This document shows, one piece after another, positions 1 to 36,561 of a stretch of DNA of 64,000 nt. The DNA comes from Anthoceros angustus (Eukaryota; Plantae; Anthocerotophyta): assembly GCA_010909165.1 (NCBI GenBank), contig VJWM01000025.1:1426001-1490000 (forward strand), in the 5' to 3' direction. Positions within the stretch are counted from its first letter, which is position 1, and every line of letters starts with the position of its first letter. The position numbers and the translations under genes were made by a program. Below the pieces are notes generated by a model that had not been told where the DNA came from, did no database searches, and saw only the letters and a program-made list of their open reading frames with translations.

Positions 1-10
1 CTACACGCAG

Positions 11-1055
11 TCTTGGGGAGCTCTCTCCATCAGTACACAAGGTCCGCCACTTATTTTAAAGGCCAACAAGGAGTATGCAACCGTGGTAGATGGGCACGTC
101 ATCTTGGGGCGAAAAAGGGATCTGGCTAGAGCCGAAGTAGAGTATGAAGGTTAGTATTTCTGAACCATCTGAATGCGTTTGAATGTCCTGGTTTTCGAGA
201 AGTAGTTGCTAGTAGGATGGCTGCCAAATTTGTAGTATACATCGTTCCTTGCATGCTCTAAGGTTGCACTTGTTGTAGGATCGAAATCAAAAAGCGTCTT
301 GGAACTCCTACAGCTATCTCGCAAGTGCAGGCAGTAGGGTGAGTCAACATGAGTGTTATCCTAATAAAGGTGGAAAGAAAATGGAGAGGTTTGGCAGTGA
401 TTGTGAGCATAGAAGAGGATGACTGCCAAATTTGTAGTATACATTGTTCCTTGCATGCTCTGAGGTTGCACTTGTTGTAGGATCGAAATCAAAAACAGCT
501 TCTGTCGGGAACTCCTACAGCTATCCCCGCAAGTGCAGGCAGTGCAGCGTTTTGCAGTGTTATCCTAATGACAGTGTGGCAGCAGGCAAATGGAGAGGTT
601 TGGCAGTGATTGTGAGCATAGAAGAGGACAGACCTGGTGGAGCTGTCGACCGAGGGCAACTTGAACCTCTTCTCAAGAATTTGAAGTTCCATACTGATAT
701 AGTGGTGAACCAATCTGAGAACGTCAAAGCTTATCTTAGGAGACTTGCCAAGCTCCCTATCCTGGCTAACGACGATTGCTTTCTGTGTTGCATTAATGCT
801 CATGGGGGGATCGATGAAAATGGACGAGATTACATCCTCATAAGTGGAGCAGGTGGGGAGAAGCTATATGTTGATAATGATATCTTGAAGCCCATCTCTG
901 AATCCAGGTATCTTGCAAACAAGCATAAGGTCTTTGTGATCAATGCTTGTCGAGGAAGTGGCAGCCTTATAACAATCAAGAAAGCCGAGGACTCTGAAGT
1001 TGAGAAGAGCCAAGTGGTGAGCAAGAGAGCCGGAGAAGTCCGAGCCCTGTCATGA
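11..1055 (+). CDS. Caspase-like cysteine protease (peptidase C14A-like), 5' part including the large (p20) subunit; gene begins upstream of the window
   Basis: Exon 11-149 is open (SWGALSISTQG...EVEYE). A GT-AG intron 150-480 joins it in frame to exon 481-1055. Caspase motifs in order: RGLAVIV, DRPGGAVD (Arg 630-632), CFLCCINAHG (His 801-803), KHKVFVINACRG (Cys 948-950), then a linker. The ORF stops 7 nt inside the insertion that starts at 1048. Confidence 0.88.
216..629 (+). repeat. Tandem ~200-bp duplication of the caspase intron 3' end plus exon start (copy 1 ~216-420 degenerate, copy 2 ~417-629 intact)
   Basis: Both copies share ggatg(g/a)ctgccaaatttgtagtatacat...ttgttgtag|gatcgaaatcaaaaa...gagcatagaagagga. 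Copy 1 has indels and an in-frame TAG. Confidence 0.9.
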
Positions 1056-1964
1056 TGGGGTCACGCTGTATCGGGATCAGCGATTGTAGCAAGTCCATGT
1101 ACGTAGAGAGAGGATATCGGTAATATCCTAACATATAGAAATGTCATGTATTGTTAGCCATGGGTTTCCAGGTAGGTCGTGACGCAGAATTACCAATCGA
1201 TTTGCTGGATCATAACAAGGAGATTCGCGCGGGAGCTGGTGAGGGTGACTAGACCGGGAAAACACAATCATGGAAAACGATGGAAGGCGATGCATGGCAG
1301 GAGGGAGCAGCGACAGGAGAGCGACAGGCGACTAGGCGCGGGATACAAGAGGCAAGCGTGCTTGGCTTAGGATAGTCTTGAGAGTCTCTTTGAGCCAGAG
1401 GGAGTGACGAGCTCCTGGCCGCTGTAACCGTTAGTGAATGCCGAAAGCTTGCTTGGGAATTTCGAGTGGATGTCCGAGTCTGACATTTGGTTTTGGGTTG
1501 CGGCACTATGCCTGGCTCCTGTTGCGAACTCTCAAACTCACCACGTTCGATCGGCTGATAGACGCTGATTGAATGAGGCATTTTGGATGGGAATTTAGCA
1601 GGATTGTTGCTTTCTTTTTCTAATCAGCTCTCAACCATATGGGCATACGGGTCGTAGTTGAGCTGTTGATCATGACATGGACGCGTTGCGATTGCTATGA
1701 CCAGGGTTGTGCTGGTGTGTGTTGGACATGTCGCGTTGCTGCAAATGCCTGCAGCCGGTTAGTGGTGTCAGCACATGCACAAGCTGTGAGAACAGGAGAT
1801 GTTGTGCTATTCCGATGTCCAGCTGTTTTTGCACGACACCTAAGGTCTTTGTGATCAATGCTTGTCGAGGAAGTGGCAGCCTTATCACAATCAAGAAAGC
1901 CGAGGACTCTGAAGTTGAGAAGAGCCAAGTGGTGAGCAAGAGAGCCGGAGAAGTCCGAGCCCTG
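926..1964 (+). repeat. 124-bp direct duplication (926-1049 and 1841-1964) of the caspase catalytic-Cys/linker region flanking an insertion
   Basis: taaggtctttgtgatcaatgcttgtcgagg...ccgagccctg occurs twice with one synonymous mismatch (ATA/ATC). Confidence 0.97.
1048..1677. mobile_element. Probable solo LTR (630 bp) inserted in the caspase gene
   Basis: Bounded by TG...CA with an 8-bp terminal inverted repeat (TGTCATGA...TCATGACA) and followed directly by TGG (PBS-like position). No coding capacity. The flanks (agccc / tggac) do not form a matching TSD. Confidence 0.65.
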
Positions 1965-2246
1965 CATTCTGTGCGCGATTGTCTCATTGTTTACTCCACC
2001 AGTCATGGACAACGATCCTTCAGAGATACCGAGAAAGGCACAAACTTTATCACAGCTTTTATGGACGCCATCATCGACGGCTCTAAAATGGCAGACGTGT
2101 TGAGCATCTTAACAAGCGTGATGCGCAAGGTCACGGATATGGAGGTCAAACTCGCAAGCGGATCAGGACAGGGCATCGAAAAGAAATTCCAGTGTCCCGA
2201 GTTGTACTCCACCCTCACAAGAGGACTGTACTGGTCTTCACCATAG
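1841..2246 (+). CDS. Caspase-like protease, 3' part (duplicated NACRG plus small p10 subunit)
   Basis: DCLIVYSTSHGQRSFRDTEKGTNFITAF matches the caspase p10 pattern DFL..YST..G..SWR....GSWFI..L (Arg 2022-2024). It is followed by ILTSVMRKV and KKFQCPELYSTLTRGLYW*. The ORF is open from 1707. Confidence 0.88.
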
Positions 2247-3067
2247 CTCACTTGCCTGGCCAGCGGGAGTTGGGTGTGGCGATGACAGCTTCAATCCGCT
2301 GTCAGGTATGGTCTCGAGAGAGACACTGTTGGTGCATTCCAACGCCTTCTCATTTAGTCCAATGCGTTCTCACTTGTCGTTTCCTACTCATTTCGGACGT
2401 TCAGGCTCGCCCGCAATTGACAAAAGAAAGTAGTGGTGCTAGGCTAAGCACGGTTGGTGCATTCTCATCTGTCCTTTCCTGGTCATTTCGTAAGTTCAGG
2501 TGCGCATGCTGCAGGCTGCATTCTGCATGCAGGAGAAACATCTCACAGCCTCCTTGTGTTTACTAGTGAACAGGTGCTAGCTCATAGAGGGTAGGGAGGA
2601 AAGAACGAGCCAGTTGTAGAGCTGTAGCTGTAGCTTTTGATTTCACAAGGCAAGTGCAGATTTGCGTTCCTCTTTCTTGAAAGTGCAGAGCGTGCCGCTG
2701 GTGGAATGACTTCTAAATCTCTCACATGCGAGGCATGCGTTGTTCTACCTTCCTGATCAGCCCAGGCTGGGAGAGATGTCTCTCATTTCGGACGTGCCAT
2801 TGTCCCATCTCTGATTTTAAACTGAAGATCACTCATCTGCCATGTCGATCACTCATCTCCATGTTTTCTAATTACATAAGTGTTAAACTAAAGAGAGTTT
2901 ACGCTGTTGAGATGTGGATTAGATCATATATGCTTCACGCACACCACGAACTTGTATGTGGTGACATGCTGATGGTGCTTGACCCTCTCGGCTCGGACAC
3001 AATCGAGATCTGCTGTGTCATCTTCCCTGTTGTACAGTGTTCTCAAGAGATGTGTGGCTGAAAAACC

Positions 3068-3790
3068 TTGTGGGGCGACCAGTGGATCCATGACCTGACC
3101 TCAGTGTCAGGCTTGAGTATGCTGATTGCTCTGTATGGAAGATTGGAGCAAAAAGGCCTGATTTTAGTTCTCAATGTTACTCTTGCTTGCTTCTCAGGGC
3201 CTGTTGGATTCCTGGTACCTTGCCAAAACTCATGGGGATGTAGGAAGCGTAACACGGTGCTTTGACTGTCTCGTTTTCGTCCTAGCGGAATGGTTTGACA
3301 GTCTTGTGAGCCAGGTTCAGCAGCAGGCGTCTCCATGCATCCTCGTGGCAAATGTGGATGCCGCTACAGCCAGGTGCACAGGAGTAGCAGGCAGGCTCAG
3401 AGAGTCAGCTGGAGCTAACAAGAAACTTGCTGTACAGTCTGGCATTGATGTAAAGGATTTGTCGTGGGTTCTCGAGAGAGAGAAGAGGGATGAAATTTCG
3501 CGCAAGGTAGAGAGTAGCATTGTATCTACGTCTGAATTAGGAAGGGAGCTACGTACACACATACCACACACCACAAACTTGGTGTTGAAGCCGCCGTGTG
3601 ACAAAGGAAACAGAGGAAGAAATGCATGCTGTGAGAAGCTAGCTCTGGCTTCTGAAACCTTGAATCAATAAAAGTAGCAACATCTCTGGAGGCAAGACTA
3701 TGTACGCTTGTGTGATACCTGCCAGCGAGACCTACATAGTCCGCTCATTCTGCAGACATGGGCAATTGCAAGCCTCTGCTACTTTCTCGT
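3068..3790 (+). pseudogene. Degenerate PPR E2-DYW:KP fragment
   Basis: FDSLVSQVQQQASPCILVANVDAATARCTGVAGRLRESAGANKK...RDEISRKVESS...HIPHTTNLVLKPPCDK...CCEKLALA aligns by eye with the intact protein at 36969-41029 ([31 protein letters not shown]...LRRSAGAWKKP...RDDISSKLRSS...HVPHTELVLKPVSEK...GHAEKLALA). The Zn-ligand His is lost and the frame is broken after 3671. Confidence 0.8.
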
Positions 3791-4723
3791 AGTATATAGG
3801 ATGCTGAATATATCGAGATTAGAGTCATGTCCTTGAGGTTATGCCAAGCCCCAAGGGCTATCCTACACATGTAGGGCTTATGTGCACCATATAATTGTCC
3901 TGTCTAGCTGATATGAGTGAGTGACTAGCTTTACTATTTACCTCAAGCCAGTGGTGCTGTTGTAGACGACATCCATTGCCTCTGCTTCGTGTGTCTGCTA
4001 ACTGTGTTGATCATGTGGCGTAGCTGTGACTGTGATGTTTGTGAGTCCTAACAGCATGGCATTACATTGCATCCATGGAGATAACATGGAGTAGAGTAGA
4101 GGAAAGGGAAATCTTTACAGAAGGAAAATGGAGCATTATTGGCCTCCCCCTTCTCTCTCTCACCTCACCAAGGCAGCCGCAGCCGAGTGTCCGGTTGTGT
4201 GTTTGTACTTTCCCGGCTGCTGAATTATTGGAAGAGGCGTGTTCCGAGGAGTTGGTTTGATGCACGAGGCGGTGTTTGCAGGCAACTCAGGGCCCCACCT
4301 GCTTCGCTCGGAGCTGCCCAGCTGCCTGCGCAGGAGGTGCAGGGATGGCAGCGCCCGCTCCGGGTATCCTGCGCCATGCTGGGTGCTGTCAGGAATGTGG
4401 CTGCCTGTGCTGCTGCCTGTGCTGCTTGTCCCATGGAGCCCATGTCCATCCACCAGCTCTGCCCCCGGTTCCTTCCATGCTCTCCTGCTCTACTAATCTC
4501 TCGTCCATACTCTCCTCCCTCGCATCCCGTTGCTGCCCGGCCCGCCACGTGTCCTCGAAAGTGAAAAACAAATGCGATTTGCTTCCCCACTACGCTAAGG
4601 AACGCTTTTCGTCCCATGTCTCGCAGAAGGCGGGGTGAGGGCGACTCAGCAGCACAGGCAGCACAGGCAGCAGGAAAGCACAAGCAGCATAACTGGGTAG
4701 GAGCACAACCCTCGGCAAGCTTG

Positions 4724-5611
4724 ATGGGGGCCAGTGCTTCATTGCCTGAAGTGGTGTGGAAGACATTCGGAGCCCTGTTGGTGCTGCCCATCCAACACAA
4801 GCTGAGAGTGTTCAGTGTACTGGTGAAGGAACGCGACTCCTTCACGCTGATCGGAGATCTGGGCAGCCTGTGCACCGAAGGGGAGTCGAAGGTGTTTCTG
4901 CAGGACGTCATTGCCCACCAGGAAAAACGCTACATCACGTCCAAGGAGCTGGGATCGATTGACCGTCTGGTGGAGAACGATTCTCGATGGTCCAGCCGGC
5001 TTCTGGCGTTTCAAAATGGTTTTGCTGCGGGGCTCCAAAATGTGGATGCGTGGAGAATCACCGTTCCCGAACACCAGTGGGTATTTGCTGAGGAGGGTAC
5101 TAGTTTGAGGGATCTGTTGAACAAATTTGTCCCTGACGACGGGGATCTCCATTTCAAGAGGGGCAGGACTCTGGATCTGTGGATTGTGACTGAGGTGATC
5201 ACAGCCCCTTCCCTGACCATGTATGCTTTGAATGGGAAAGGAGCTGACATCGGCTTCTCCGTGACCCCTCCTGCTCCCCTGCCGGTACCGGTGGACGTGC
5301 AAATCACCCTCGGAGGAGAGGGCAGGGCAAAGCAGTTCATCTCCATCGCTGGGCCAGAACTGGATGACACAATTCAGCCCTTTCCCTTCGCCTTCAGGGG
5401 GTGGAAATGCACATACAAGAGTGGCTTCTTGAAGAAGTGGAAACCAGCCCGCCTCCAAGCGGACTCGTTTGATGTTCCACCTCTGAATGGAACACCTGAG
5501 AGACCAATCCGCAATGCAAGATGTGCTACCCCTCTGGCGGATCCCGATATGGCGGATTTTGTCGGGGAGGATGACTGGGTCACCACCATCCGGGATCCGG
5601 CAAAGCATTGA
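4724..5611 (+). CDS. Gasdermin-like pore-forming protein (bacterial/fungal type), 295 aa from the MGASAS start; ORF open from 4616
   Basis: Single-exon ORF. Segments FGALLVLP...LRVFSVLV...LIGDL, LWIVTEVITAPSLTM, PFAFRGWKCTYKSGFL and the tail DFVGEDDWV follow, in order and spacing, my recollection of Bradyrhizobium gasdermin (GINLILPP...PGDLII...RLGGW; FFVVTKVWRARGIRI; IFGLTLREVTYKDGAI; AFIGDDAFV). Not confirmed by HMM or structure search. Confidence 0.78.
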   Translation: MGASASLPEVVWKTFGALLVLPIQHKLRVFSVLVKERDSFTLIGDLGSLCTEGESKVFLQDVIAHQEKRYITSKELGSIDRLVENDSRWSSRLLAFQNGFAAGLQNVDAWRITVPEHQWVFAEEGTSLRDLLNKFVPDDGDLHFKRGRTLDLWIVTEVITAPSLTMYALNGKGADIGFSVTPPAPLPVPVDVQITLGGEGRAKQFISIAGPELDDTIQPFPFAFRGWKCTYKSGFLKKWKPARLQADSFDVPPLNGTPERPIRNARCATPLADPDMADFVGEDDWVTTIRDPAKH

Positions 5612-7643
5612 TGGCGGTCTTCGTGTGAGGCATTGCATTACAGTTAGAAGTGTGACAAACGTGTTGGTTAGGCAATGGCACTCCCTTTCTGGATGTTGCC
5701 ATCCCTACCTAGTGCACAAATTCTGTTTCAATCAGTGCAGCTTGAGCTGGATGCTGCTTGTGCCAGCCCTTGTCGTTTGATTCAGAGGTGGGAAGATCTG
5801 ATAGCTTCCTGGCTATAGCTTTGTTGTCTTCAAGTATGAGACGTTCCATCCTTCGTGTCTGGTGCTGTGCTCTGACACATACTGGAGATTCATGCATTCA
5901 TCAAAACACGGTGAAATCATTGGGCTGCGGTGTTTTAATGTATCTCACCAATTTCTACCACAGTAATCAGTCGATTAGTCTCATCTTCCTTGTGCACAAT
6001 GTCTGAGGCTGGTGGTAATCACTTCATCTGTGCGTCTGCATACTGTACACACGTAGATGATCAATCACACAGGAATCGGATATGTCCGGACGCGTTCAAT
6101 CAAATACGATGTGTTTCGGTAATCAAATCAGACCTGTCCCCTGTCCGGCACCACACGCTACATACTGGATCTTGACCTTTGAAGTGAAGGCATTCCGGAG
6201 ACCCAGTCAGGCGCGTGAAGAGTGAAGGCGCGTGGGCGGTGGAAGCAGGCATCCCGGTCCGGCAACCGGAATATTTAGGCATGTGTCAAGTTTGTGCAGA
6301 TGAGCTCTTCCTCCCTCTCACCTTATTGCAAAGCTTGTGTCCAGATGGAAGGTTTAACGCGGTTCTTGGGTATGTTGTAGTTGCCATCACTATGCTGCAG
6401 ATGACCCTAATCCTGTGACGTGAGGAATTGGGTAGCTGGCCGAAGAAGCAGAAAGAGCAGGAGCAGCAGCACCCTATCTCTGAAGACTAGCTAAGACTTT
6501 CCGTTGCTTTCGCTTTTCTTGGTCTGGTTTGGAGATCTGTTACACCCTACTTCCGCATTATCTACTAGGCAGTTAGTTCCACGTTCTCCGACCGAGCTGC
6601 ACCTTGTTGCTCCTCAATGTCTTTACCCACCACAACCCATGGTTCTGCTGCTCCAGATATTCTTGTCCGTAGCCCATACCTGTAAGCCGCTTTGCCGGCA
6701 TGTGTGCCTACAAGATGATCATACGAGACTGAGATGCATGGGGCAGGTGTCATCCCAATGTGCTGTTCATCGAAAAGATTTCACGAAATGCCTGTTGCCG
6801 GCTTCTTCGTTTGCATGCTATTGGCAATCCAGCGGTGGCTGCGATCTGGCGAACTTCCGATTTCACAATGGGCCTATAGGGAACAAGACATGCTCAAAGG
6901 CAGTTCCCTTCTTCATTTTATGGTTGTCAACATTTAGCAGGTTTCCATGACACAACATCCCTCTCCAAACCCAAAATTCATGGGTAGCTATTATGGATTG
7001 TCCTGTCCTCACAGGACACGGCATGAGCTGAGCAGTTCTGAATAGGCCACTTACCACAGAAGCCAGAAAGTAGGACTGATCCTTAATCACCATCCACACC
7101 CCAAAGCAGACGCACCTTCGCTTGCTGATCGATACGCACACCTGCACAATGGCCAGTGGCAAGCTTCTCAGCTAAAATTTCCACATACACAAGTCAGTGG
7201 TAGCCTTTGTGGACAGCCAGCGTGCAGAAACAAGTGGGTGTCTCCGGGAAAGAATGAAATTGCTGCTCACGAACGAGACTCACCAGAATCAACCACCTTC
7301 AATGCCAATTTTCACCATAACGAACGTACTGCAATGGAGGTCAGGATTGGCTGCCAGCCCCAGGGCATAATCGTTTGTCAAAGGCCCAGACACATAACAC
7401 CGGTACTGCTGGTGGTAATCAGCATGAAATAGATGGATATCTGATGCACAAAACCCATCATCAATACAATAGGAGGCAAAGAGAATAGACGATCAACCCC
7501 TCAATCATGTGAGCCATCAACGCACCAAGTTAATCGTTGATCGCAGACTACTTTAGCATCCTTATCATCTTACTCAAATGAGCACATCGGGCTTCCTTGT
7601 TCATCAACGGATCCTAGTCCCACATGTATAATCCTTGTCACCC

Positions 7644-7660
7644 TATATATATATATATAT
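7644..7660. repeat. (TA)n microsatellite
   Basis: tatatatatatatatat. Confidence 0.9.
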
Positions 7661-10189
7661 GTATATGTTTGATTGAGGGAAAAAGGGGCAACGAAGGTGG
7701 ACTTCGGGGGTCAAGGTGAGAAGGAGCGACTAAGTTCCTTACCTAAAGTTACCTACTGCTCCTAGAACATCATATGCAGGCAGAACAAATGGCCTGCAAA
7801 CTACGGAGGAAGAGCAAGAAGCGTCACCTGCCGCCGCTGCCTTGTGAAGGATTGCCGTCGAGAGGTCCCTTTGAGAGTCAAAGCACAGCATGGTGACCAC
7901 AACTTGTGGAAACGCGGAAACCGTCCCTAGTTGGCATGTTGGAGTTTTGTGGAATATGTTTTATGCATAAATATTGTCAAATTGATCTCAATTTTGTTCT
8001 ACATTACGTTTTTTGGGAGGAGAATTTTGTTGAATTTTTTTCCCACAAAAACATACATAACATATATCATTATCATTATTACCTGAATTAACGGTGGGAC
8101 AAATGACAACCTGAGGGACTAAGTACCCCTTGTCCACCTGCGGAATGCGCCGTTGCGCGCGGGCGCGACCACATGTGTTGATTAGGTTTTGCAAAGCGAG
8201 TGTTTTGGGGGCGGACTCTTCATGTAACAGACGTTTAGACGTAAGCGCGTCGTGGAGGCCAGCATTTACAGTGTGTGCACAGACTCGTTTGCACTCGTGA
8301 CGTGGAAGCTGGAAGTGTGGCCGGCTTATATTCGTTTGTGGGTGGCCGCGGGGCGTAAGAGCTGGGTTTTGATCGATTGGAGGCTGCTTGATTTTGGAGG
8401 TTGTTTCTAACATGGTCTTTGTTTGCTAGGAGGGTGCTAGTGTGGTGGTGCTAGGAGGGTGCTAGTGTGGTGGTGGGGCATTTTGAGTGTTGTCGTGAAG
8501 CGTGAAAAGTTTGGGACTACCGGTGTCCCGAGTATGAGCTTGTCCCGGGGCAACTCCACCAATCTTAGCTGTGAGGACTATGGGACTGCCTTGTCCCATA
8601 GCCGGGAGCCCCAGCCTTGTGGACCGCCATGTCCCATGGTTGAGCCCCGGCAGCCCGCAGGGATCGCCATGTCCCATGGCCGATCTGGTTGTAGCTCCCT
8701 TGCCTCCTATTGCCAGCCCACTTATCGTCCCAAAGATTCGCGACCCAGAGCTCGAATGGGGCCAAAGTTTCCCCAGTATGAGTCCGCCACAAAGGGTCCC
8801 CTTGCAAAGAACAAAATATGCTGGGAGAGCATCGCTCCTACAAAGGGATCCAGCGCAATGGCGGATTCACGAGATTTCTTGAAGATTTCTTGGCCAGCCA
8901 GCCTACTACCGAGCCTGAATCGAGCCTTGGCGCCTTGTTGGGAAGCACGCGCTGAGCAAAAAACACACAGATCTGATCGATCTTGGACAAATATTCTTGG
9001 TAGCTCTTGTCAATTTAGTCTTTTGGTGGAGTCAGTCTACTTTTTGTGTATGAATAGCTGCAAAACTACCCTGGAAGGAAACCATCCCAATACGGATCCG
9101 ATCCAAGGGTACTCAACCCTAGAAGGACGAAGCGGGTTTCTCACCATTTTGAGCCAACTCACTATCGATAAACAATTATACTAAAATAATTAGGCTCAGC
9201 CCTTCGCTGCACAATTAGCAAAACCTTGCATTCATTCGTTCTACGTTTTCGAGAAAATAACCGGACACAAGCAAGCTTCCACCGACTTTTTCTGGCGTGA
9301 AGATATGAGGCTATTGCACCGAGGACGGAAAGACGGGAAGCAGCATCTTCGATCGGCTACAAAATCTTTATGCTGAGCTCATCAGATGCGGCTGAGCATC
9401 CTCATAAGATCAAGCTGAACACCCTCGTAAGATCCCACCCCAAACCGATATTCCTACCAAGCCCTGCGATTTTTTTGATCACAAAATGACCTCTACACAA
9501 CAACCAGTGGTCGAGCAGCTCGGGAATCTCTTCAAATCTCATCGTTCGATGAGCCCTTGTACGTAGACTAGTAGACAGGGCAGATTTTCCTGCGGTTAAA
9601 TCAAGCATGCCAAACTTCGCTCAAGGGACCCCCAATCGTGAGGCTTCGCAAAAACAAATCACGGCCCGGAAAAGAGCGAGAATCGAGTCAAAATTCATCC
9701 TTCCGGGGTTAAGGTGGTCGCAAGTTGACCACTAGTTGCAGCTTAACTTGCATCCTCACAGGCTAATAGGTATGTTCTCTGGCACTACGCAGTTGTCAAT
9801 GCTCTCCCTGCTTCCCTTAGTGCCAATTCCAGTAAGCCCGACTCTACCCTGCTCTCAGTTCCTTGCCTCTTCAACAAAATGGCTCGTCTGGTATATCGGT
9901 CACGGATGGCACATCACCAGTCTCACATCCGAACTACAGTCTGCACATGAAAGGGAAGTCTGTTGACAAAACCCGAAACGAGTTAGACAGCAGAGCTCTC
10001 GCAAACACAAAAACAGTGAAGACGTTTGACGACTCTCGAACAGAACCAGCACAGAACTGTGGCCGGAAAACTGAATAAATGATGCAAGCTGGTAATACAA
10101 CAGGCTGCTTGAGTGTTGCATTCCAGACAGACGCTGGGGACAAAATTTAAACGAGCTTGAAATAACAGCCCGCAGGCACCGAGGCAAGG

Positions 10190-12637: not shown

Positions 12638-15600
12638 CTACTTTGGTCTTCCTTTACTCTGGGGATGCTTCTCATCACCAACCATGAAACTATGCACGAG
12701 CCCATCCTTGTCTGTCCACGAGCTCCGACCTGGCTGCTTCCATGCGCTGATTCGCTCTCTCATAGCCTGCATCTTCCGAGCTTGCTCCCACATCTGAGCA
12801 CCCGTGAATATGTTTGACATCAACACGTACGCTGCAGCATCTCTTTCATCTAGCTTAACTGCTTCATTGAAAGCATGGAGTCCCACCTCCACATTGCCCC
12901 ACTTTCGACAAGCACCCAACAGAGTGTGCCAAACAGCACCATTAGGCTGCACAGGCATTGTCCTTACTAGAGCTAGTGCCTCATGCAGATGGCCTGCACG
13001 ACCCAAAAGATCTACCATGCATGTGTAGTGATCCTCTGTGGGAGTAATGCCATTATCTCTGTTCATAGCCTGAAAGGACTCCCACCCCTTGTTGACTAGT
13101 CCCGCATGACTGCACACCGTTAGTAGACTAAGATATGTGATACTGTCCAACGGTAAGCCATCAGCCATCATTCTCTGAACCAGGTCAAAGACCACTTCAC
13201 TGTCTCCTTGACAGGCGTAGCCTGCAATCAGTGCATTCCAAACCACAAAGTCTTTTTCATCCAACACATCAAACACCTGCTGTGCATCGACCATGCTCCC
13301 ACACTTTCCGTACATGTTAATCAAACTGCCTGCTACAAACTGATCACCTTGAAGACCTTGTTCTACAATCTGTGCATGTAGCAGCCTTCCCAGGTATAAA
13401 GCTGCCACATTGGCACATGCCTGCAGGAGGCACACAAATGTTACAGAATCGGGTGCAGCCATGCCTCCTTCCTGCATGGCACTAAAGAGGCGGAGGGCTT
13501 CGTGCTCCATCCTCTGCTGGCAATATCCTGCAATCATGGCATTCCAAGTCACCACATCTTTATGAGCAAGTCCATCAAACACCTTCTTTGCATCTTCCAA
13601 GCTGCCACACTTTGCATACATGGTCACCAAACTGTTGGCTACAAATACATCAGCTTGATGCCCTTGCTTTCTGATTTGGGCATGAAGCTGCTTCCCCTTC
13701 TCCAATGCCAGGGTGCCCACACTAGCACATGCCTGCAGGAGGCACACAAATGTCATGGTATCGGGTACAGCCACGCCTCCTTCTTGCATAGAACTATACA
13801 GACTGAGGGCTTCATGGCCCCTACCCTTCTGAGAATATCCTGCTACCATGGCAGTCCACGTAACCACATTCTTTTCATCAAGTCTGTCGAAAAGTCTCTG
13901 AGCTTCTTCCAAGCTGCCACATTTTGCATACATATTCACCAAACTGCTGGCGACGAACACATCAGCTTGGTGACCACGTTCTCTAATTTCACTGTGAAGT
14001 TGCTTCCCCTTCTCCAACGCTGAGGGACCGACAGATGCACATGCCTGCAAGAGGCAAACAAATGTTACAGAATTGGGTATTGCCATGCCACCTGCTTGCA
14101 TAGCACTGTAAAGGCGGAGGGCTTCCTGCCCCATGCCCCGCTGAGAATATCCTGCTATCATGGCAGTCCACGTCACCACGTCTTTCTGAACAAGTCCGTC
14201 AAACAGTCGCTGGGCGTCTTCTAGACTTCCACACTTTGCATACATGTTCACCAAACTGCTGGATAGAAACGCATCAGCTTGGTATCCTGCTTCCCTAATC
14301 TGTGTATGAAGCTGCTTCCCCTCCTCCAACGCCGGGGTGCCCACACTCGCACATGCCTGCAGGAGGCACAAAAAGGTCACAGAGTTGGGTACAGCTATGC
14401 CTTCGTCTTGCATAGCGCTGTAGAGGCGAAGGGCTTCCTGCCCCATACCCCGCTGAGAATATCCTGCTATCATGGCAGTCCACGTCACCACATTTTTTTC
14501 CTTAAGGCCATCAAACAGCCTCTGGGCGTCTTCCAAGCTGCCACACTTTGCATACATGTTCACTAAACTGTTGGCTACAAAAACATCAGACTGATGTCCT
14601 TGTTCTCTAACCAGGGCATGAAGGTGCTTCCCCTTCTCCAATGCTGGGATGCCGACACTTGCACATGCCTGCAAGAGGCACACGAATGTCACAGCATTGG
14701 GTACAGCCACACCTTCTTCTTCCATGGCACTGTAGAGCCGAAGGGCTTCCTGCCCCATGCCACGCTGAGAGTACCCTGCTATCATGGCAGTCCAGGTCAC
14801 CACATCTTTCCGACCAAGTCCATCAAACAGCCTCTTGGCATCCTCCAAGCTGCCACACTTGGCGTACATGTCCACCAAGCAACTGTACACAAACAGATCA
14901 GGCTCCACGCCAGTGGCCAACACAGCAGCATGAACCTCCTGCCCGGATTTCAGGTCTCCGCCCCTTGCACAAGCCTTCAGAACTGCCACAAACACATAAC
15001 CATCTGCCTTCACATTCGACCGGCACATCCGACGATACAACCCTATGGCCTCCCTCGCTCGCCCCTGCTTCACATGCGCAGAAATAACGGAACCCCACAT
15101 GAAGGCATCTGGCTGGTCAACCACTTCAAACACATCCATCGCGTCTTGCAACCTGCCATTAGAGGCATACAACCGCAAAACATAGTTGCACATGAACATC
15201 TCCGCCTGGTACCCCATCCTCACCATCAAAGCATGCATGCGGATACCCAAAACAAGATCGTTCTCCAATACACATTTCTTCAACACTTCGCAAAACAGTG
15301 CTTTGGAAATACAACCTTCCTTCTGCACCAAAACTCCCAGACCCTCAACAGCCTCAGCGAGGTGGCCATCACAACACAGCCTGTTCACCATCCCAGCTGT
15401 CACAATGCTGTCGTCACCTGCAGGCCTGCGTGGCATCTCCAAATCCAGAGCAGCAAGCTGCGCATCCACCCAGCCCAGCTGGTACAAACTGTTCAACCAG
15501 AGGACCTCCCGGCACTGCCTGTGCCGGAAGTCAGGCACCCAGAGGCTCACCCCATTTTGCCTGCCATCCAAACCAAGTGTAGGGTCCCGATACCCGGACC

Positions 15601-15898
15601 CCCGTCCAGCAAGAAATCCTCTTGGACGGGCTGGCGTTTTTGCAGAGCTGCTGCTGCTGCACCTCCCGACTTGGTTGTGCGCCCACAGATGGTTGCTCGG
15701 AGTCAGGCGACCGGGAGCTCTCCCTATACTCATCGCCAAACCATGACATTGTTGCGACCAGGAAGACGGTCCCCACGACAGGTCAGTGTTGCTGGACTGA
15801 ATTCCAACGCTCCAGACACCCATTTCTCGAAGCTGCACACCCTCAGCTTTCGCATCCGAGCGACCCGGGCATCCCAGATGGATCACTCCGTCAGTCAA
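12638..15898 (-). CDS. PLS-class PPR protein with E1/E2 and a DYW domain truncated after the PG box (organellar RNA-editing specificity factor)
   Basis: About 23 P/L/S motifs (VTWTAMIAGY; VTFVCLLQAC; SLVNMYAKCGSLED), E motifs, then KQPGRSSWTDKDGLVHSFMVGDEKHPQS and a stop. No HxE or CxxC. True start codon uncertain. Confidence 0.95.
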   Translation of the reverse strand: MTDGVIHLGCPGRSDAKAEGVQLREMGVWSVGIQSSNTDLSWGPSSWSQQCHGLAMSIGRAPGRLTPSNHLWAHNQVGRCSSSSSAKTPARPRGFLAGRGSGYRDPTLGLDGRQNGVSLWVPDFRHRQCREVLWLNSLYQLGWVDAQLAALDLEMPRRPAGDDSIVTAGMVNRLCCDGHLAEAVEGLGVLVQKEGCISKALFCEVLKKCVLENDLVLGIRMHALMVRMGYQAEMFMCNYVLRLYASNGRLQDAMDVFEVVDQPDAFMWGSVISAHVKQGRAREAIGLYRRMCRSNVKADGYVFVAVLKACARGGDLKSGQEVHAAVLATGVEPDLFVYSCLVDMYAKCGSLEDAKRLFDGLGRKDVVTWTAMIAGYSQRGMGQEALRLYSAMEEEGVAVPNAVTFVCLLQACASVGIPALEKGKHLHALVREQGHQSDVFVANSLVNMYAKCGSLEDAQRLFDGLKEKNVVTWTAMIAGYSQRGMGQEALRLYSAMQDEGIAVPNSVTFLCLLQACASVGTPALEEGKQLHTQIREAGYQADAFLSSSLVNMYAKCGSLEDAQRLFDGLVQKDVVTWTAMIAGYSQRGMGQEALRLYSAMQAGGMAIPNSVTFVCLLQACASVGPSALEKGKQLHSEIRERGHQADVFVASSLVNMYAKCGSLEEAQRLFDRLDEKNVVTWTAMVAGYSQKGRGHEALSLYSSMQEGGVAVPDTMTFVCLLQACASVGTLALEKGKQLHAQIRKQGHQADVFVANSLVTMYAKCGSLEDAKKVFDGLAHKDVVTWNAMIAGYCQQRMEHEALRLFSAMQEGGMAAPDSVTFVCLLQACANVAALYLGRLLHAQIVEQGLQGDQFVAGSLINMYGKCGSMVDAQQVFDVLDEKDFVVWNALIAGYACQGDSEVVFDLVQRMMADGLPLDSITYLSLLTVCSHAGLVNKGWESFQAMNRDNGITPTEDHYTCMVDLLGRAGHLHEALALVRTMPVQPNGAVWHTLLGACRKWGNVEVGLHAFNEAVKLDERDAAAYVLMSNIFTGAQMWEQARKMQAMRERISAWKQPGRSSWTDKDGLVHSFMVGDEKHPQSKGRPK
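13290..14950 (-). repeat. 312-bp-period intragenic tandem repeat (PLS triplets)
   Basis: The anchor aagctgccaca(c)ttt recurs at 13599, 13911, 14223 (variant), 14535 and 14847, exactly 312 nt apart. Confidence 0.92.
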
Positions 15899-16372
15899 GA
15901 AATAAACTCATACATCTCTTGACACATTGTCGAACTGTTTGTCAAAAATAAGTGGGAGAAGGTCGGGTGGTTATGACGAGGGAAATGCTCCATCTGAATG
16001 GTTGGGTACGACAGATTGCCACCAACCAAGACATCACCGTGGAGATTCCTATCAGTCAGGAACAGCGAGCACACGATTACTGCAAACAACAACGAAAACC
16101 TCAGACAACAAGCTTGCAGGCGGGAAAAATGTGAGACCTACTTTAGTGATGTGGGGAGGAATTTTGTTCGTTGCAAGGGAGTTAGAGGAAGCTTGGGAGA
16201 GAAACTTCGATGCAGCTCCTGGTATGCCGCCTAATCGAAATGAACCAAAATGCGCCTCTAACTTCAGTCCAGAAGCCTGATGCTCCTAGATGTCATCGAA
16301 GGGCCTTACAAGGTCGATCGAGGCAATTCTGTTTGTTATTGCCGTCTGCTTCTCGATCGCAGCGCAAGCATC

Positions 16373-17767
16373 ATGGCTGCACTCAGCTCTGCGTCTGCGG
16401 CCTGCCACCATCTGCATGCGGTCGCCGCATCATCCCGGCGAGAGCTTTCTGCAGTGGAGAATCGCGCCGGGCTGCGCTTGACAACCGTGCAATTTGCAAT
16501 GAAGCCTCTCAAGGTCCCGATCAGACGAGGTTCTGGAGGCCGGATGTTATACGCTAGCGCTAGCGCTAGCCCTAGTTCATCCTTTTCCTCCGAGTCTCCT
16601 TTCCCAGTGGAAGAAGATGAGATCAAGGAGGCTGTGACGGCTGAAGGCCGGCCTGTGAGCCGCTTGTCGCAGGCGGATTTTGTGAAGGAGGCGGTCCGGA
16701 GGCTGTCGCAAGAGGATCTGGAGGTGGCAGTGCGCAAGTACAATTTGGAGGACGAGCTGTTCGCGGAAGTGGATTATGCGCAGGTGAATGCCTTCACTGA
16801 TCGGGCCTTCAGTGGCAACCCGGCTGCGGTGTGCTATCTCCCCTACGCCGACGACTCACGGTGGCTTCAGCTAATTGCTCGAGAATTCAATCTGTCGGAA
16901 ACGGCCTTCGTGGTGAAGCGGCAAGGCTCGAGTCCGGAGGAAGGGCAAGCGGACGAGGATGAGGATGAGGATGAGGAGGAGCCCGTAGCTCCGGAAGAAG
17001 TCATCGACTTCGACCTCCGGTGGTTCACGCCCAGAGTGGAAGTGGATCTGTGCGGCCATGCCACCTTAGCTTCAGCTCACCTTCTGTTTGCTGCGGGCGT
17101 CGTGGAAGGCGACCTCATTCGCTTCCACACCAGATCAGGGATTCTACAAGCCAGAAAGGTGCAGGGATACGACGAATCGGTGGAACAAGGCAAGAAAAGA
17201 CCGTCCGGCAAGGGCGTGGTGGAGCTGGACTTCCCTATTTCAACAGCAACACAAATCGTTGGCGAACAGGTGCGGAAGCTTGCAACCGGGCTGGGGCTTG
17301 AACAGCAGCAGGTGGTTTGGGCTGGAGCCACTAGTCTTGGGGATTTCCTTCTGGAACTGGCGTCCTGGGAGCATGTGGAGGAAGTGAAGCCCATACTACA
17401 TCTGCTGGACGACTTGCCCGGCCGGGGCGGAGTCATCGTCACTTCCCGCGCCAAGCCTGGCAGCGGCTACCACATCGTCTCCCGCTTTTTTTGCCCTAAA
17501 GCTGGCGTCGCTGAAGATCCTGTCACAGGCAGCGCGCATTGCACGCTCGGCTGGTACTGGAGCTCCAAGCTAGGCATAAGCAGTCTGGAAGCCTACCAAG
17601 CGTCGGAGCGTGGCGGCTCCATATCCGTCCGGGTGGACGAGCAGGCCGGCAGAGTGTTTCTCCGAGGGGCTGCCGTCTTGGTCATGGCTGGCGTCATTCT
17701 CAACCCTGTCACCCCGGGGTCAGGGCCGTCTAAAACTGACGACAACTTTCCCTCGGTAGCTACTTAG
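16373..17767 (+). CDS. PhzC/PhzF-family (DAP-epimerase fold) protein with probable plastid transit peptide
   Basis: VNAFTDRAFSGNPAAVC, EFNLSETAF, LRWFTPRVEVDLCGHATLA, SRFFCPKAGVAEDPVTGSAHC, RGG. Ser/Ala/Arg-rich N-terminus. Single exon. Confidence 0.95.
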   Translation: MAALSSASAACHHLHAVAASSRRELSAVENRAGLRLTTVQFAMKPLKVPIRRGSGGRMLYASASASPSSSFSSESPFPVEEDEIKEAVTAEGRPVSRLSQADFVKEAVRRLSQEDLEVAVRKYNLEDELFAEVDYAQVNAFTDRAFSGNPAAVCYLPYADDSRWLQLIAREFNLSETAFVVKRQGSSPEEGQADEDEDEDEEEPVAPEEVIDFDLRWFTPRVEVDLCGHATLASAHLLFAAGVVEGDLIRFHTRSGILQARKVQGYDESVEQGKKRPSGKGVVELDFPISTATQIVGEQVRKLATGLGLEQQQVVWAGATSLGDFLLELASWEHVEEVKPILHLLDDLPGRGGVIVTSRAKPGSGYHIVSRFFCPKAGVAEDPVTGSAHCTLGWYWSSKLGISSLEAYQASERGGSISVRVDEQAGRVFLRGAAVLVMAGVILNPVTPGSGPSKTDDNFPSVAT

Positions 17768-21631: not shown

Positions 21632-24600
21632 CTATGGATACGATGTCAAAGTGATGTCTAACTTCAGAGGACCCGCCCCCTTCCTTACCTCAAATACCTG
21701 TTGCACATCCTCGCCTGCAACTGAGACCGAATATTGTCCTGTAAATCCCCGAAATGCTATCTGTCCCTCAGCATTCGTCACACCACTGGTCTTGGTCAGC
21801 CATTCCTGCTTCAAAGCTAGAAATCGTTTTCCTGCTTCTGTTAGACTGGAGTCCCAATTCACCAGATGAGCACGCTCTCTGGACATGGCACCTTCCCAAA
21901 AGCCCCAGAGAAGGACTCCTTCGACACCTGGATGTGCGTATGCCTCTCTGAGAACCACTTCCAAATCGTCAGCCCTGATGTGCTCGTTTGATGATGCAAC
22001 ATCGACTTCTGTCAACCAAATAGGAAGTCCAGCAGAGCTCAAGACATCGAAGGATTCACGCAAGATGGAGCCCACTGGAGCATCAATGTGGCCCTGGACG
22101 CCAACCCCTCCCACTGTTGCTCCTTGTCTCTGAAGCTTCACTATATGTTCCACATATCTCTGCGCGGAGGAGTTGGCGTCACAGCCATCCTCGACATGGT
22201 AATCATTGACAAACAAGGTTGCATGGGGGTCGAATTGCTTGCACAGCCGGAACATATGTGGAATGATTTCACGGCCAAGTCTGTCTTTGAAGAACGAGCC
22301 ATGTAGCATTTCGTTGTTCACATCATAATGCTTAAACCTTCCCTGATAGCGAGATAACATGTCCTTAATCCGTCTTTGCACAGCATCACGCAAAGCAGGC
22401 TCCGGAAGACACTTCAGCCATTCCTGCACTGTATGTTCCACCTCCCAGAAGATACAATGGCCCCTTACAGGAATGCTATGCTGGGAACAGAAGTCCAGCA
22501 GTTCATCAGCGTCTTTGTAGTTAAGCTTACCCTGGCTGGGTTCAATCCACGTCCATTTCATCTCATTTTCAAATACTGCCCAATTGAACTGCTCCAGAAA
22601 GAACTTCACATAACTAGGGTTGTCGATGTTGTGTCGATTTATACATGAGCCAAGAGGAAAATCGTTACTTGTTTGGAGAACCTGCAATGACCGCGAGGGC
22701 ACAACGCGCCCATATCTGTCTTTGACAGTTAATATGACCTCTCGCTTGCGCACCTGGGTAGGGAATCTCTCAAGGTGTTAGCCCAGAGCGTGAATGAACC
22801 ATTCACCAAATACAAGAGCTGAGATGAGCAATATGAAGCCATTTGCACACCCGAATGAAATAACGTACCGTGTCTGTGCATGCAATTAGTTTTGTCAATC
22901 TCTCCGTTTTGTCCACTGCAAGAATCCGTAAGCCAGCTAACATAACGCTAGTACCAGGAGCTGGACCTTGAACGTACACAACAACCTTCTTGGCTGCGTT
23001 CTCTAACCGAAATGAGCCTCTTACTTCAGTCCAGGACCCTGATGCATCCGCCTGCGTCTCTCCCCCATTTACCCATGCATCGTCCACACTAAGAGCTACA
23101 TTAACCTTCTGGGCTTCAGTTGCAAGACGAAGTCTCACCCAGGCCTTAACTTCGTAAGTGAGGAATAGCCGCACTCTGTCAGTGATGTTCTGTGCTGGAC
23201 CCTCCCAGTAGTGATGTCGTTGTGTGGCAACAACACATTGAGATCCACGTGGTCCTTCACTGGTCACTTCCAGATGACATGACCCAAGAGCATACCAGGA
23301 GGCCAGTCCCTTGGAAAACGTGCTGTTTTCAACAATATTAATTCCATATCTTGGATCCTGTAACAAACACGTCCAAAGTTGCCCTCACCACTCTACTGAC
23401 CACAAAGTGCCCAACACCAACGATCAAGATACGAGATAAAAATGATCATCCCCAGAGCAACGAACATGACATCCAACCTCAAGGACAGGACGATTGGCAG
23501 GAGTTGGTTTCTTTAGGGGACGCATGGAAAAGCTCCGCACACTCATATCAACCCCACTGGGAGGTCCTTCCAAATAGGCTACCGCTTTGCTAGGTAGCTT
23601 GTGGAGAGTCAGCCTTCCCTTCAGCTCAACCCAACCATTTGTTGATGCTTCAGTTCTGCATGTACAGAATATGACACAAGGAGGTAGATGATTGAAAACT
23701 GGAAGAAATGGAGTGTCTAAAAGATGGATTTGAAATGCTCTACCTCCCCATGGAAATATATTGCTCTGCTCCATCCTGATTCACAATATGTAGTGTAGCA
23801 AGCACAGTTGCAGTGTTGACTGATCCATACAGCCTCACGACTGCATTGACATCATACACCACATTTGCTTTGAGGCGCCTAGTGATGTCTTGCTGAATGC
23901 CTTGCCATTCAGCACGGCGACATGATAGGACAACACAGTTGTTTATCCTGGAGAAGGAAGGCTTGCATCCATTGCAGGTCCAGCTTTCCAGTCCATCCTG
24001 AAAATTCCAGTTTTCTAGTATCTCTCCAGTACATACGCTCGGGTCTCCGTCCATATCCTCTTGCTTTTCCGTTGATCTGCTTCTACCCATCGCCGCTTGC
24101 TTCTGCAAAAAGCATCAGATCCATTCCATCAAGCGCCTCATCCCAAGAGTAGCCTTTACCACAGGGTGATGGTGTCATACCACAGCCACAGGCTCTCCAC
24201 TTGCTGGTGTGATGGATAGTCTTGCAAGAAGAAGACACACACCACGAGGCGGACCTTCAACATACACCAATGCCTTTGGCCAGGATGACTCCACCCGGAG
24301 CTTGCCCTTCAGTACCGTCCATTTCCCTGCCGAGACACTCCCCCTGCACAGCCCCACGACTCGTTCAAGCCTGGAAAACTGCAGAGAACTAAGCAAATTG
24401 ATGCACAAATCAGCTTCGGGAAGCACAATACTTTGCCAGCTGGATATACTGCGGTGCCCCGCCGGCAGCAGTGTCGAGCTTCAGGGTCACAAGCACTGGT
24501 ACATCTCCATCCTGTCCCACAGCACTCACCACAGCTTGCAAATCATACTCAACAGACGGCCTCAACCTGTCTTGTATCTCCTGTGAGATGCCCTGCCACG

Positions 24601-33563: not shown

Positions 33564-36561
33564 ATGGTGGCACCTGGTGGGCGCGTAAGGAAAGACGAGG
33601 AGACGTTGGATGCCTTGCCTGGCAATCGCAATATTATGGATCCATCACAATTGCAAGAACGCAATAGTTTCAGGGACTTGCCACGGTCGATGCAGAACTG
33701 CGGGCTTTCAAATGGTCACTCTACGTGGACGGTGGACGTGGAACAGAATGCAATGAAAGCATATCACCCCCCCACGCGCAAGGCTGCAGCGCGGGCATCA
33801 GGACCTCCACCAGCACCCATCACCTTGAAGGTTGGTTGAAATTCAATCGCCTCGTCACCAAGTTCGCCTATTTTGTCAACACGTTGTTGGGAGTTGGTTT
33901 GTGTGCTGTCTAAAACTGTTTCTAAGCTCTGAATCTTTCACGGTCCATTGTTTCCCAGCTCCTGAGATGTTAAATCATTCTGCAGGTTTCCACTTGCATG
34001 GTTATTATGGCTTTGAAATTGCATGTTGAGTACTAGCATGGCCTTTATCACTGTTAACAACTCCCAGAACATCCCTCAGGCAACAGTACCAGTAGAGTAT
34101 GGTTTTAAGTAGCAGTGGATACCGATTCGTGCGTTTGAGTTCTGAACAATAGAGAGGACGATATTTTTCAAATTTCTGGAACAGACTAGTAATCTTCGTG
34201 AAGGATGCAATGCAAAGCACGGCACTGAAATAGGTGGCTTGAAGCTGTTTGTCGCATGTTGTTTTTAAGGAAGTAGGAGAAATGTTTTCACCTGTACGAA
34301 ATCCGCTTAGTTCCTCGCCAAGAGAGAGTGAGCAGGAAATCTGAAACCTGTTTCGTTTGATTGTGCAGTTTGAAGATGTCGCTTACAATGTGACCCTGAA
34401 ATCGAAGGGGCAATGGTGGAACCCAGCAAACATGGTCAGTTATGTGCAGCAAAGAGGAACGGAGAAGGAAATACTGAAAGGCATCACAGGGACTGTAAAA
34501 CCTGGAGAGATGCTAGCGATGCTGGGGCCTTCAGGTAGCGGGAAGACTAGTTTGTTGAGCATTTTGGGAGGTCGTGTAGCAAGTGGGAAGCTCTCAGGCA
34601 CTATTCTGTACAATGATTTGCCATACAACAAAGCTATCCAAAGACGAACAGGCTTTGTCACTCAGGATGATATTCTACATGTACATCTTACTGTTAAGGA
34701 GACCCTGGTGTACGCGGCATTATTGAGGTTGCCGAGTGATAGATATAACAGAAACGAGAAAATCGGAAGGGCAGAGGAGATCATTGTTGAGCTTGGATTG
34801 GAGAAGTGTCAGGATGTCAGGATTGGAGATACGTTCGTACGAGGAATATCTGGAGGTGAGAGGAAAAGGGTCAGCATTGGTTTCGAGCTCATCGTGGATC
34901 CCAGTTTGTTGTTGCTAGACGAGCCCACATCTGGCCTGGACTCCACAACAGCATCTCGGATAATAACCACACTGCAAAAGTTGGCAAATGCGGGGCGGAC
35001 TGTGGTCACAACTATACATCAACCATCTAGCAGAGTATATCACATGTTCAACAAGATTATTTTACTGTCTGGAGGGCGTGCACTGTATTATGGTCAGGCA
35101 AGCGAAGTAATCCACTACTTCGCTCCCCTCGGCTTTCCTCCAGTTTTGGCAACGAACCCGGCAGACTACATTCTAGATCTTGCAAATGGTAACTGTTGTG
35201 ACACCTTTGGTTCCTTCGCTAAATATTGGCACGCTGGTCTTGCTCAAAATTGCTTTTGGGTGTGTTGGGGCCTGTTTCCTGTAACAAACTTTTGTGGGCC
35301 ATTCTGAGTTGTGGTGTTTTCACTTTGTATTTCCAGGTGTAACGCATGATATGCAGCCTGGTGGTGACGAAGGGCTACCAATTGACGAAGCTGAAGAGCT
35401 AAGAAAACAGCAGACCAAGGTGCAGGCTGCCGTTGTTGATCGTTTGTCTGATGCATATCAGCGGCTTTTGAAAACAAAGGCGAAAGAAGAAGTGGAGAGT
35501 CATAAATCTACGGAGCAGGAGATAAAAGGTGTGGCATCGATCGTCTCAGACCTGCTTGACATGACTTACCCATTATTGAAAGCGGTTACATGCTTTAAAC
35601 CTTTATTCAACGTTTCTCTCCTGTCTCTCACCAGCTTTAAAGGAGAAGGTGGACTGGCCAACATCGTGGGTGGAACAGTTCAGTGTTTTGCTGGTGAGGG
35701 GACTGAAAGAGAGAAGGCATGAAGCTTTTGGAGTGTTAAGAGTGACACAGGTTTTGGCGGTTTCATTCATTTGTGGACTACTCTGGTTTCAGTCGACCAC
35801 GGCACATATTCAAGATCAGGTCAGTTATGACCGTTCACAATGAATTCGGGCAATCCTTCGTTTGCTCCTTATTGCCTAGACTTCTCATTTGTGACTTGTT
35901 CTTCGGACAGCTTGGGTTGCTGTTCTTCTTCTCAACGTTCTGGGGGTTCTTTCCCCTGTTCTCCGCTATTTTCACCTTCCCTCAAGAACGGAAGATGTTG
36001 ATAAAGGAGCGCACCTCAGGAATGTACCGGTTGTCGTCATATTTTTTCGCAAGGACAATCGGAGATTTGCCACTGGAATTCGTTCTGCCCATCCTATTTA
36101 TTATCATCGTCTACTGGATGGGCGGTCTGAAACCAGCTGCCGACACCTTTTTCCTGAGTATGCTGGTTCTTCTATTCAACGTGCTGGTCTCACAGGGACT
36201 CGGTTTATTCCTTGGAGCTGCAGTGATGGAAACCAAGCAGGCAACGACATTGGCATCTGTTATCATGCTTCTTTTTCTGCTTGCTGGGGGCTTTTACGTG
36301 CAGAGAACGCCACCCTTCATTGCATGGGTCAAGTATCTCTCGTTCAGCTACTACTGCTTCAAAATACAGCTATCACTCCAGTACGACAAAGACCAGACAT
36401 ACCCGTGTGCCAGCGGAGTATGTCGAATTGAAGATTTCCAGGAAGTTAAGAATGTGGGTCTCGGACATATTGGCACAAGCCTCCTGGCACTTACACTTAT
36501 GATGGTCGGGTACAGGTTCCTGTGCTACTTGGCATTGCGAAGGCTGAAGGGCTTCAAATAA
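33564..36561 (+). CDS. Half-size ABCG transporter (ABCG9/14/21-like)
   Basis: GPSGSGKTS, ISGGERKRV, LLLDEPTSGLDS, TIHQPSS; TMD with ERKMLIKERTSGMYRLSSYF and LAGGFYV. Confidence 0.97.

Follow-up and report, generated by a model that had tools for sequence, protein, structure and literature searches.

Plants are said to have neither caspases nor gasdermins (PMC12521494), and reviews record gasdermins from metazoans, fungi and bacteria, with the microbial ones mostly in clusters with proteases (PMC12881547; PMC11249213). A stretch of 64,000 nucleotides (nt) from the hornwort Anthoceros angustus (contig VJWM01000025.1; hereafter the window) raises the question of whether a land plant can carry a caspase and a gasdermin side by side and, if so, whether the two belong to one cell-death pathway. 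An initial annotation of this DNA had placed a caspase-fold protease and a gasdermin-like open reading frame (ORF, 4724-5611) on the same strand, about 2.5 kb apart. ORF and Pfam calls agree with this arrangement: a caspase domain and an intact gasdermin ORF lie on the same (+) strand of the window, with a gap of 2.5 kb between them. Our reading, to which we assign a probability of roughly 0.6, is that a plant cell-death module built of sensor-caspase and gasdermin has one of its units at this locus, with an intact gasdermin and an adjacent caspase that was recently damaged. Searches of the literature pairing gasdermin with bryophytes or Viridiplantae returned no report of a plant gasdermin, and neither a plant caspase nor a plant gasdermin was reported in the titles or abstracts that broader searches listed.

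The gasdermin-like gene (4724-5611, + strand) is intact and intronless and codes for 295 residues. Prediction by AlphaFold2 (AF2) from the single sequence was unusable, with a mean predicted local distance difference test (pLDDT) score of 32. With alignment A1, made up of the window protein and its relatives (see below), the predicted template modelling (TM) score was 0.65; the putative pore-forming core, about residues 1-243 of the AF2 model, was predicted at a pLDDT of 70-88, and residues 244-295 fell below 50. The resulting model was compared with known structures in several ways. In Foldseek, the top eight matches in the PDB were bacterial gasdermins (7N51, 7N50, 7N52, 9A84 and 8SL0; E 2e-7 to 4e-5, probability 1.00), and these were followed by GSDMB, GSDMA3, RCD-1, GSDME and GSDMD. 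With VIA-align, run over 48,161 representative chains, the best 13 matches were all gasdermins (Z 12.1-7.1) and ranked above the cholesterol-dependent cytolysins. The best match by shape in the ESM Atlas was a Bact_GSDM cluster (TM 0.53/0.58); by language-model features the nearest clusters there were Ascomycota proteins, and a cluster containing Bact_GSDM scored 0.94. As judged from the AF2 model, then, the product of ORF 4724-5611 folds as a gasdermin, as had been proposed for it.

Profiles built from bacterial gasdermins (bGSDMs) agree with this assignment. The PADLOC bGSDM profile detected the window protein with an E value of 1.2e-5 (residues 146-240), as well as the relatives P0002 (1e-9) and P0003 (6e-5). 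With the NCBIfam model prok_gasdermin, P0002 reached E 2.7e-6 and the window protein E 0.04; all scores from this model lie far under the curated cut-off of 100 bits. A family profile compared with the PDB had bacterial gasdermins as its three best matches, co-linear with the query. Identity of the window protein to bGSDMs is 12-17%. When the single gasdermin sequence was the query, phmmer against the PDB and a word-indexed homologue search both returned nothing, and an exact look-up of the protein, with either of its possible starts, found it not to be on record.

Among 1.8 billion representative sequences, phmmer found five relatives of the window gasdermin (28-31% identity, E 1e-9 to 3e-6), none of them assigned to a Pfam family or named informatively. 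Together with the window protein they form alignment A1, of six distinct sequences; a word-indexed search with A1 recovered P0002 only. A Met-Gly start is invariant across the alignment, and serine occupies position 6 in five of the six sequences. The resulting MGxxxS start (4724-4741) has the form of an N-myristoylation motif, and may correspond, in eukaryotes, to the lipidation of bacterial gasdermins at the N-terminus. That all members start with Met-Gly, aligned to 4724, argues that the gene begins there and not at the in-frame upstream ATG at 4616, which was rejected. Were the ATG at 4616 used, the Met-Gly motif at 4724-4741 would be masked.

Alignment A1 also bears on how the protein might be activated. 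The residue D247 (codon 5462-5464; LQAD|S) is one of 15 invariant columns, and the residue that follows it is always serine, glycine or alanine, giving the family consensus xQAD and then S, G or A. D247 sits 4-6 residues past the last strand of the core, at the point where confidence in the model collapses; in a structural alignment, the activated bacterial gasdermin 8SL0 ends at model residue 243. After D247 comes an acidic tail of about 48 residues with an invariant phenylalanine, F279 (5558-5560). The tail is modelled at a pLDDT below 50, and its packing against the core is unreadable. DxxD sites had been noticed in the tail, and the first of them (DSFD) begins precisely at the invariant D247, with a small residue next to it and at the boundary between core and tail. 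Judged from the alignment and the model, D247, carried on a flexible linker, and the tail look like a caspase site placed before a short inhibitory peptide.

If D247 is a caspase site, the protease encoded upstream should be of a kind that selects for aspartate. Two ORFs on the + strand carry its parts: 444-1055 matched Pfam Peptidase_C14 over profile positions 1-138 (E 1e-13), and 1707-2246 matched positions 116-233 (E 2.4e-18). The large-subunit-like part, with the linker, spans 481-1049, and the small-subunit-like part spans 1965-2246, with the stop codon at 2244-2246. Against the PDB the N-terminal piece matched caspases only, with caspase-8 (E 1e-5) followed by caspase-2, caspase-1 and an ancestral effector caspase; the best matches of 481-1049 were the p18 subunits of caspase-8 and caspase-2. 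In the alignment to caspase-8, the arginine of EDRPG falls on the second arginine of RDRNG, INAHGG on ILSHGD and INACRG on IQACQG. The equivalent of Arg179 is thereby placed at codon 630-632, the catalytic histidine at 801-803 (INAHGG) and the catalytic cysteine at 948-950 (INACRG), which is where the initial annotation had put the cysteine. The C-terminal piece matched effector-caspase p10 subunits and also caspase-6, -3 and -7 (E 6e-7 and weaker), with its SFR aligned to the SWR motif of these subunits, so that the Arg341 equivalent is encoded at 2022-2024. The His-Cys dyad and both arginines of the S1 pocket are retained, and the earlier suggestion that Asp-selecting residues are kept holds at the level of the alignment. 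The position of Gln283 (caspase-1 numbering) is taken by asparagine. No metacaspase or paracaspase was listed among the PDB matches of either piece, and a word-indexed homologue search with the caspase piece returned nothing. By these alignments, the protease has a C14 domain that resembles true caspases, and its S1 pocket is of the Asp type.

The structure of the caspase gene differs in two respects from the one first described. The gene had been taken as free-standing and as starting at 11. We found instead that frame 2 is open, without a stop, from the left edge of the window: the 3' end of an upstream coding exon occupies 2-149 (+ strand) and ends in the donor GAAG|GTTAGT, and a GT-AG spliceosomal intron follows at 150-480 (GT at 150-151, AG at 479-480). 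Splicing out 150-480 preserves the frame (..EVEYEG-SKSK..), and a contig of the sequencing run X1 (see below) runs from 150, where it has a loose end, straight into the sequence of 482 onward. This intron is genuine. Since the open exon 2-149 is spliced in frame to 481, the caspase forms the final domain of a larger gene, which begins to the left of the window; the 49 residues of the exon end had no match in Pfam. We also observed that about 202 nt had been duplicated in tandem at an earlier time (214-419 and 416-628, which are 86% alike but differ by indels); this duplication straddles the acceptor of the intron, and its degenerate copy (214-419) now lies inside the intron.

The second difference concerns the interval 1050-1964, which the initial annotation had also treated as an intron. 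The joints 1049|1965 were rejected as splice sites, as GT..AG ends are missing; the claim of a spliceosomal intron in the caspase gene thus stands for 150-480 and falls for 1050-1964. What occupies the interval is a 791-nt insert (1050-1840, + strand) and one copy of a 124-nt duplication. The insert breaks the caspase frame with a stop codon at 1053-1055, two codons after 1049, so that the local copy has no uninterrupted coding sequence for the domain. It is flanked by a direct repeat (926-1049 and 1841-1964), the second copy of which repeats the active-site cysteine and the linker and differs from the first by one synonymous mismatch. Near-identity of the 124-nt copies points to a recent insertion. 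Interrupted in this way by the insert and the duplication, the protease encoded here is probably dead, or else its expression is weak. Pfam found nothing on the ORFs of the insert, no other copy of the insert is present within the window, and a scan for inverted repeats found no transposon-like ends on it.

Could the message nevertheless be repaired? The repeat contains the motif AG|GT (928-931), and therefore splicing from GT 930 to AG 1844 would give a seamless, in-frame message. On this alternative the local pair would be fully functional, the 915-nt stretch that comprises the insert and one repeat copy being removed as an intron, and this caspase would activate the gasdermin next to it in cis. 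The period of 915 nt is a multiple of 3, and the AG at 1843-1844 follows a stretch rich in pyrimidines. The donor, however, is weak (AAG|GTCTTT), and the near-identical 124-nt duplication is what a recent insertion would leave, not an established intron. Evidence on both sides also comes from X1, the only public run that holds the locus, guessed to be RNA, whose contigs were placed on 1-6000. Depth in X1 was about 1 across 201-400, zero across 1001-1800 and in the hundreds elsewhere, an exon-like pattern that suggests a transcriptome; the gap over 1001-1800 between covered flanks is also what splicing of the 915-nt stretch would produce. Yet none of the X1 contigs shows the splice 930..1844 of the window copy. 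The sole contig that skips the 915 nt (923 joined to 1839) is only 94% alike to the window, so it derives from a paralogue. Moreover, every X1 contig differs from the window at 876 and 2014, and therefore this caspase copy was not seen in X1; the gasdermin was seen exactly, in contigs that cover 4658-6000. Against a transcriptome, paralogue-like contigs cover the spacer as well. We take these data as weak evidence for expression of the gasdermin and for absent or low expression of the local caspase copy. We consider a spliced and fully functional local pair unlikely.

One X1 contig, of 818 nt, deserves separate mention. It is exact over 4658-5040, skips 4614-4657, and has 4445-4613 joined to opposite-strand sequence near 2181. 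This contig is possibly chimeric; alternatively, it may represent a head-to-head junction of caspase and gasdermin from paralogous genes.

If the two genes of the hornwort locus form one system, they might be expected to occur together elsewhere, and they do. The gasdermin relative P0005 is found on the metagenome contigs L007 and L010 and on a 30.7-kb contig, and homologous C14 genes lie upstream of it on this independent, plant-like DNA. On one strand, the order is a C14 gene (262 residues), an NB-ARC-LRR gene, a 238-residue ORF, a second C14 gene (275 residues), a 236-residue ORF, a second NB-ARC-LRR gene and the gasdermin. The two C14 genes are 38% and 33% identical to the caspase of the window. 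For the first of them on L010, identity is 38% over the large-subunit piece and 35% over the small piece, and the histidine, the cysteine and both arginines are retained. The second (L010:7538-8365) has tyrosine in place of the catalytic histidine and glutamine in place of the Arg341-like residue. These substitutions make a pseudo-protease probable, one that may act as a regulator, as c-FLIP does. A protease gene next to a gasdermin is thus recurrent (in the window, and with P0005 on L010 and L007), and the two families are neighbours in lineages whose gasdermins, when aligned, share only about 25% identity.

The L010 contig also points to the nature of the sensor. At its end the first C14 ORF has CAG|GTAAGT, and TTACAG stands before the NB-ARC-LRR ORF that lies 280 nt downstream (L010:1855-5564). 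The C14 and NB-ARC exons stay in frame when joined, so they probably form one caspase-NB-ARC-LRR gene. We regard L010:1855-5564 as a probable caspase-NB-ARC-LRR(-ARM) fusion from a eukaryote with plant-type receptors of the nucleotide-binding leucine-rich repeat class (NLRs). Our searches of the literature found no description of a caspase as a type of NLR N-terminal domain. A further gasdermin relative, P0001, lies tail-to-tail with an LRR-ARM ORF at a distance of about 380 nt (L002:183-2631). This neighbour shares 41% identity with the C-terminal end of the NLRs on L010, and by this comparison P0001 represents a third lineage with a gasdermin beside an NLR-like gene. On L010, we also noted that the 236-residue ORF, for which there is no Pfam family, is linked by GTAAGT..CAG, via a small exon, to the second NB-ARC-LRR (L010:8662-12748); judged by this linkage, it could represent a further N-terminal domain of unusual kind on an NLR of the plant type.

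The initial annotation had supposed that the pair was acquired horizontally. In our comparisons nothing was found in support of this, and the gasdermin relatives that we found look eukaryotic. No close bacterial or archaeal relative of P0002 was confirmed in bacterial and archaeal genomes, and therefore no donor lineage can be named. Likewise, no relative of alignment A2 or of the window protein was confirmed in metagenome contigs.

A working scheme can be drawn from these observations. The sensor would assemble the caspase domains and so activate them by proximity. The active caspase would then cut the gasdermin after D247, the predicted site; the acidic tail, which probably holds the core inactive, would leave, and the core, perhaps N-myristoylated, would insert into membranes and kill the cell. 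In A. angustus, paralogous caspases encoded at other sites of the genome would act in trans on the gasdermin, which is still intact.

Several points weigh against reading the locus as a unit of such a module. The gasdermin matched neither PF04598 nor PF26164 in Pfam at E<=1, its model is of medium confidence (pLDDT 62) with the tail left unmodelled, and its relatives among the 1.8 billion representatives are only five and weak. The caspase frame is broken as assembled, and the two positions at which all X1 contigs depart from the window lie in this gene. Whether X1 is RNA or DNA is only a guess, hence expression of the gasdermin is unproven. A complex prediction with the p20-like part, the p10-like part and the gasdermin gave an ipSAE (an interface score derived from predicted aligned errors) of 0.00, a value that weighs neither way on binding. 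Finally, some eukaryotic gasdermins, RCD-1 and that of Trichoplax, act without cleavage (PMC12881547).

This last point leads to a second alternative, namely that the gasdermin is real but not activated by a protease, or is non-lytic, and that its linkage to the caspase gene reflects no more than immune-gene clustering. The cleavage-independent proteins resemble the window gasdermin in fold (VIA-align Z 10.0 for 8jyw, from the comparison with Neurospora RCD-1 and Trichoplax GSDM, and 7.6 for 8jyz) and in their small size. That the tail resisted modelling and that the complex prediction yielded nothing would also fit such a gasdermin, and plant immune genes do commonly cluster. RCD-1 and Trichoplax GSDM, however, have no tail that a protease could remove, whereas the family of the window protein combines a conserved Asp site with a conserved motif in the tail and a neighbouring protease gene. 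Moreover, an invariant aspartate followed by a small residue is found exactly at the core/tail boundary in sequences that are about 25% identical; the co-linked protease has an Asp-type pocket; and the linkage involves the same caspase family in two very distant lineages. A gasdermin that is independent of its neighbour therefore seems distinctly unlikely, given these three features, and we favour a gasdermin controlled by a sensor-bound caspase.

The surroundings of the pair are clearly those of a plant, as first described. The window holds, on the - strand, a 1085-residue PPR-E protein (12638-15898), a 1233-residue PPR protein with E and DYW-deaminase domains (36969-40673) and an SBP-box gene (41626-44736), and its GC content is even (0.45-0.56). 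A PPR remnant had been reported between the caspase and the gasdermin, and tblastn with the window's own PPR-DYW protein bears this out: residues 1045-1197 of that protein mark a fragment resembling the E/DYW C-terminus at 3228-3725 (+ strand; 35% identity over 174 residues, E 4e-13). By this match the pseudogene is real, if a small remnant. Pfam did not call it, with no match on the ORF 3174-3671, and found nothing on the ORFs of the 2250-4720 spacer. That the block is a contaminant or a mis-assembly, so that the genes are not really in the plant, is highly improbable: such a view could appeal to the reported absence of both families from plants (PMC12521494) and to an intronless gasdermin that resembles bacterial models, but it is contradicted by the even GC and the PPR-DYW and SBP genes on the same 64-kb stretch, by the PPR fragment between the two genes and the GT-AG intron in the caspase gene, by gasdermin relatives with introns, acidic tails of eukaryotic style and neighbouring NLRs of the plant type, and by the failure to confirm any close bacterial relative of P0002 in bacterial and archaeal genomes.

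A tblastn search of the whole window with both proteins found no second copy of the gasdermin or the caspase, and Rfam had no match on 1-8000. Long ORFs elsewhere in the window code for a PhzF-like protein (16280-17767, E 2e-68), a GH10 xylanase-like protein (21632-22753, E 6e-48) and an exon of an ABC transporter ATPase (34357-35307).

How does the hornwort locus compare with known gasdermin systems? Bacterial operons of a bGSDM and a protease (caspase-like, CHAT or subtilase; 7N50, 7N51, 7N52 and 8SL0) provide the closest fold and the only matches by sequence model. As in these operons, the core has about 240 residues, a short C-terminal tail stands in place of a large repressor, and a caspase-family protease adjoins the gasdermin. 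Here, in contrast, the genes lie on a eukaryotic chromosome and have introns, the proposed cut is after aspartate, and the protease is probably fused to a eukaryotic sensor (NB-ARC-LRR in L010). The amino termini differ as well: bGSDMs are reported to carry an N-terminal cysteine that is palmitoylated, whereas the Met-Gly start found here is of the myristoylation type.

The proposed logic of sensor, Asp-specific caspase, linker cut and pore is the same as in the mammalian inflammasome (NLR, caspase-1/-4/-5/-11 and gasdermin D). There, too, the linker is cut after an aspartate with a small P1' residue, and the protease of the window is closest in sequence to true caspases. Unlike its mammalian counterpart, the hornwort gasdermin has no large C-terminal repressor, and we saw neither CARD nor PYD adaptors; the caspase would be fused to the sensor itself, and the genes, which are unlinked in mammals, lie physically together. 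The fungal pair HET-Q1/HET-Q2, like other pairs of gasdermin and protease in fungi, offers another parallel, as a short-tailed eukaryotic gasdermin clustered with a protease that removes a tail of about 5 kDa (PMC12881547). The nearest clusters by language-model features being Ascomycota proteins is a further likeness to the fungal system. HET-Q2 is, however, a subtilisin-like serine protease, said to cut at F238, whereas the hornwort gasdermin is paired with a caspase and conserves an aspartate.

The hornwort locus appears, then, to hold a new variant of the caspase-gasdermin pair, in a kingdom thought to be without either. We would put at about even odds the broader proposition that non-seed land plants have a pyroptosis-like pathway, in which animal-type caspases fused to sensors cut N-myristoylated, short-tailed gasdermins after a conserved aspartate and so open lethal pores in membranes. 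If this is true, the caspase-gasdermin axis reaches beyond animals, fungi and bacteria, and textbooks that deny plants both caspases and gasdermins are mistaken for part of the plant kingdom. A linked module in a land plant would represent a fourth kingdom-level lineage for this death pathway. Compared with mammals, sensor, protease and pore would form a more compact arrangement, the protease being joined to the sensor itself, and the scheme makes a clean and directly testable prediction, a cut after D247. For research on plant immunity, it would provide a new candidate executioner beside the resistosome channels.

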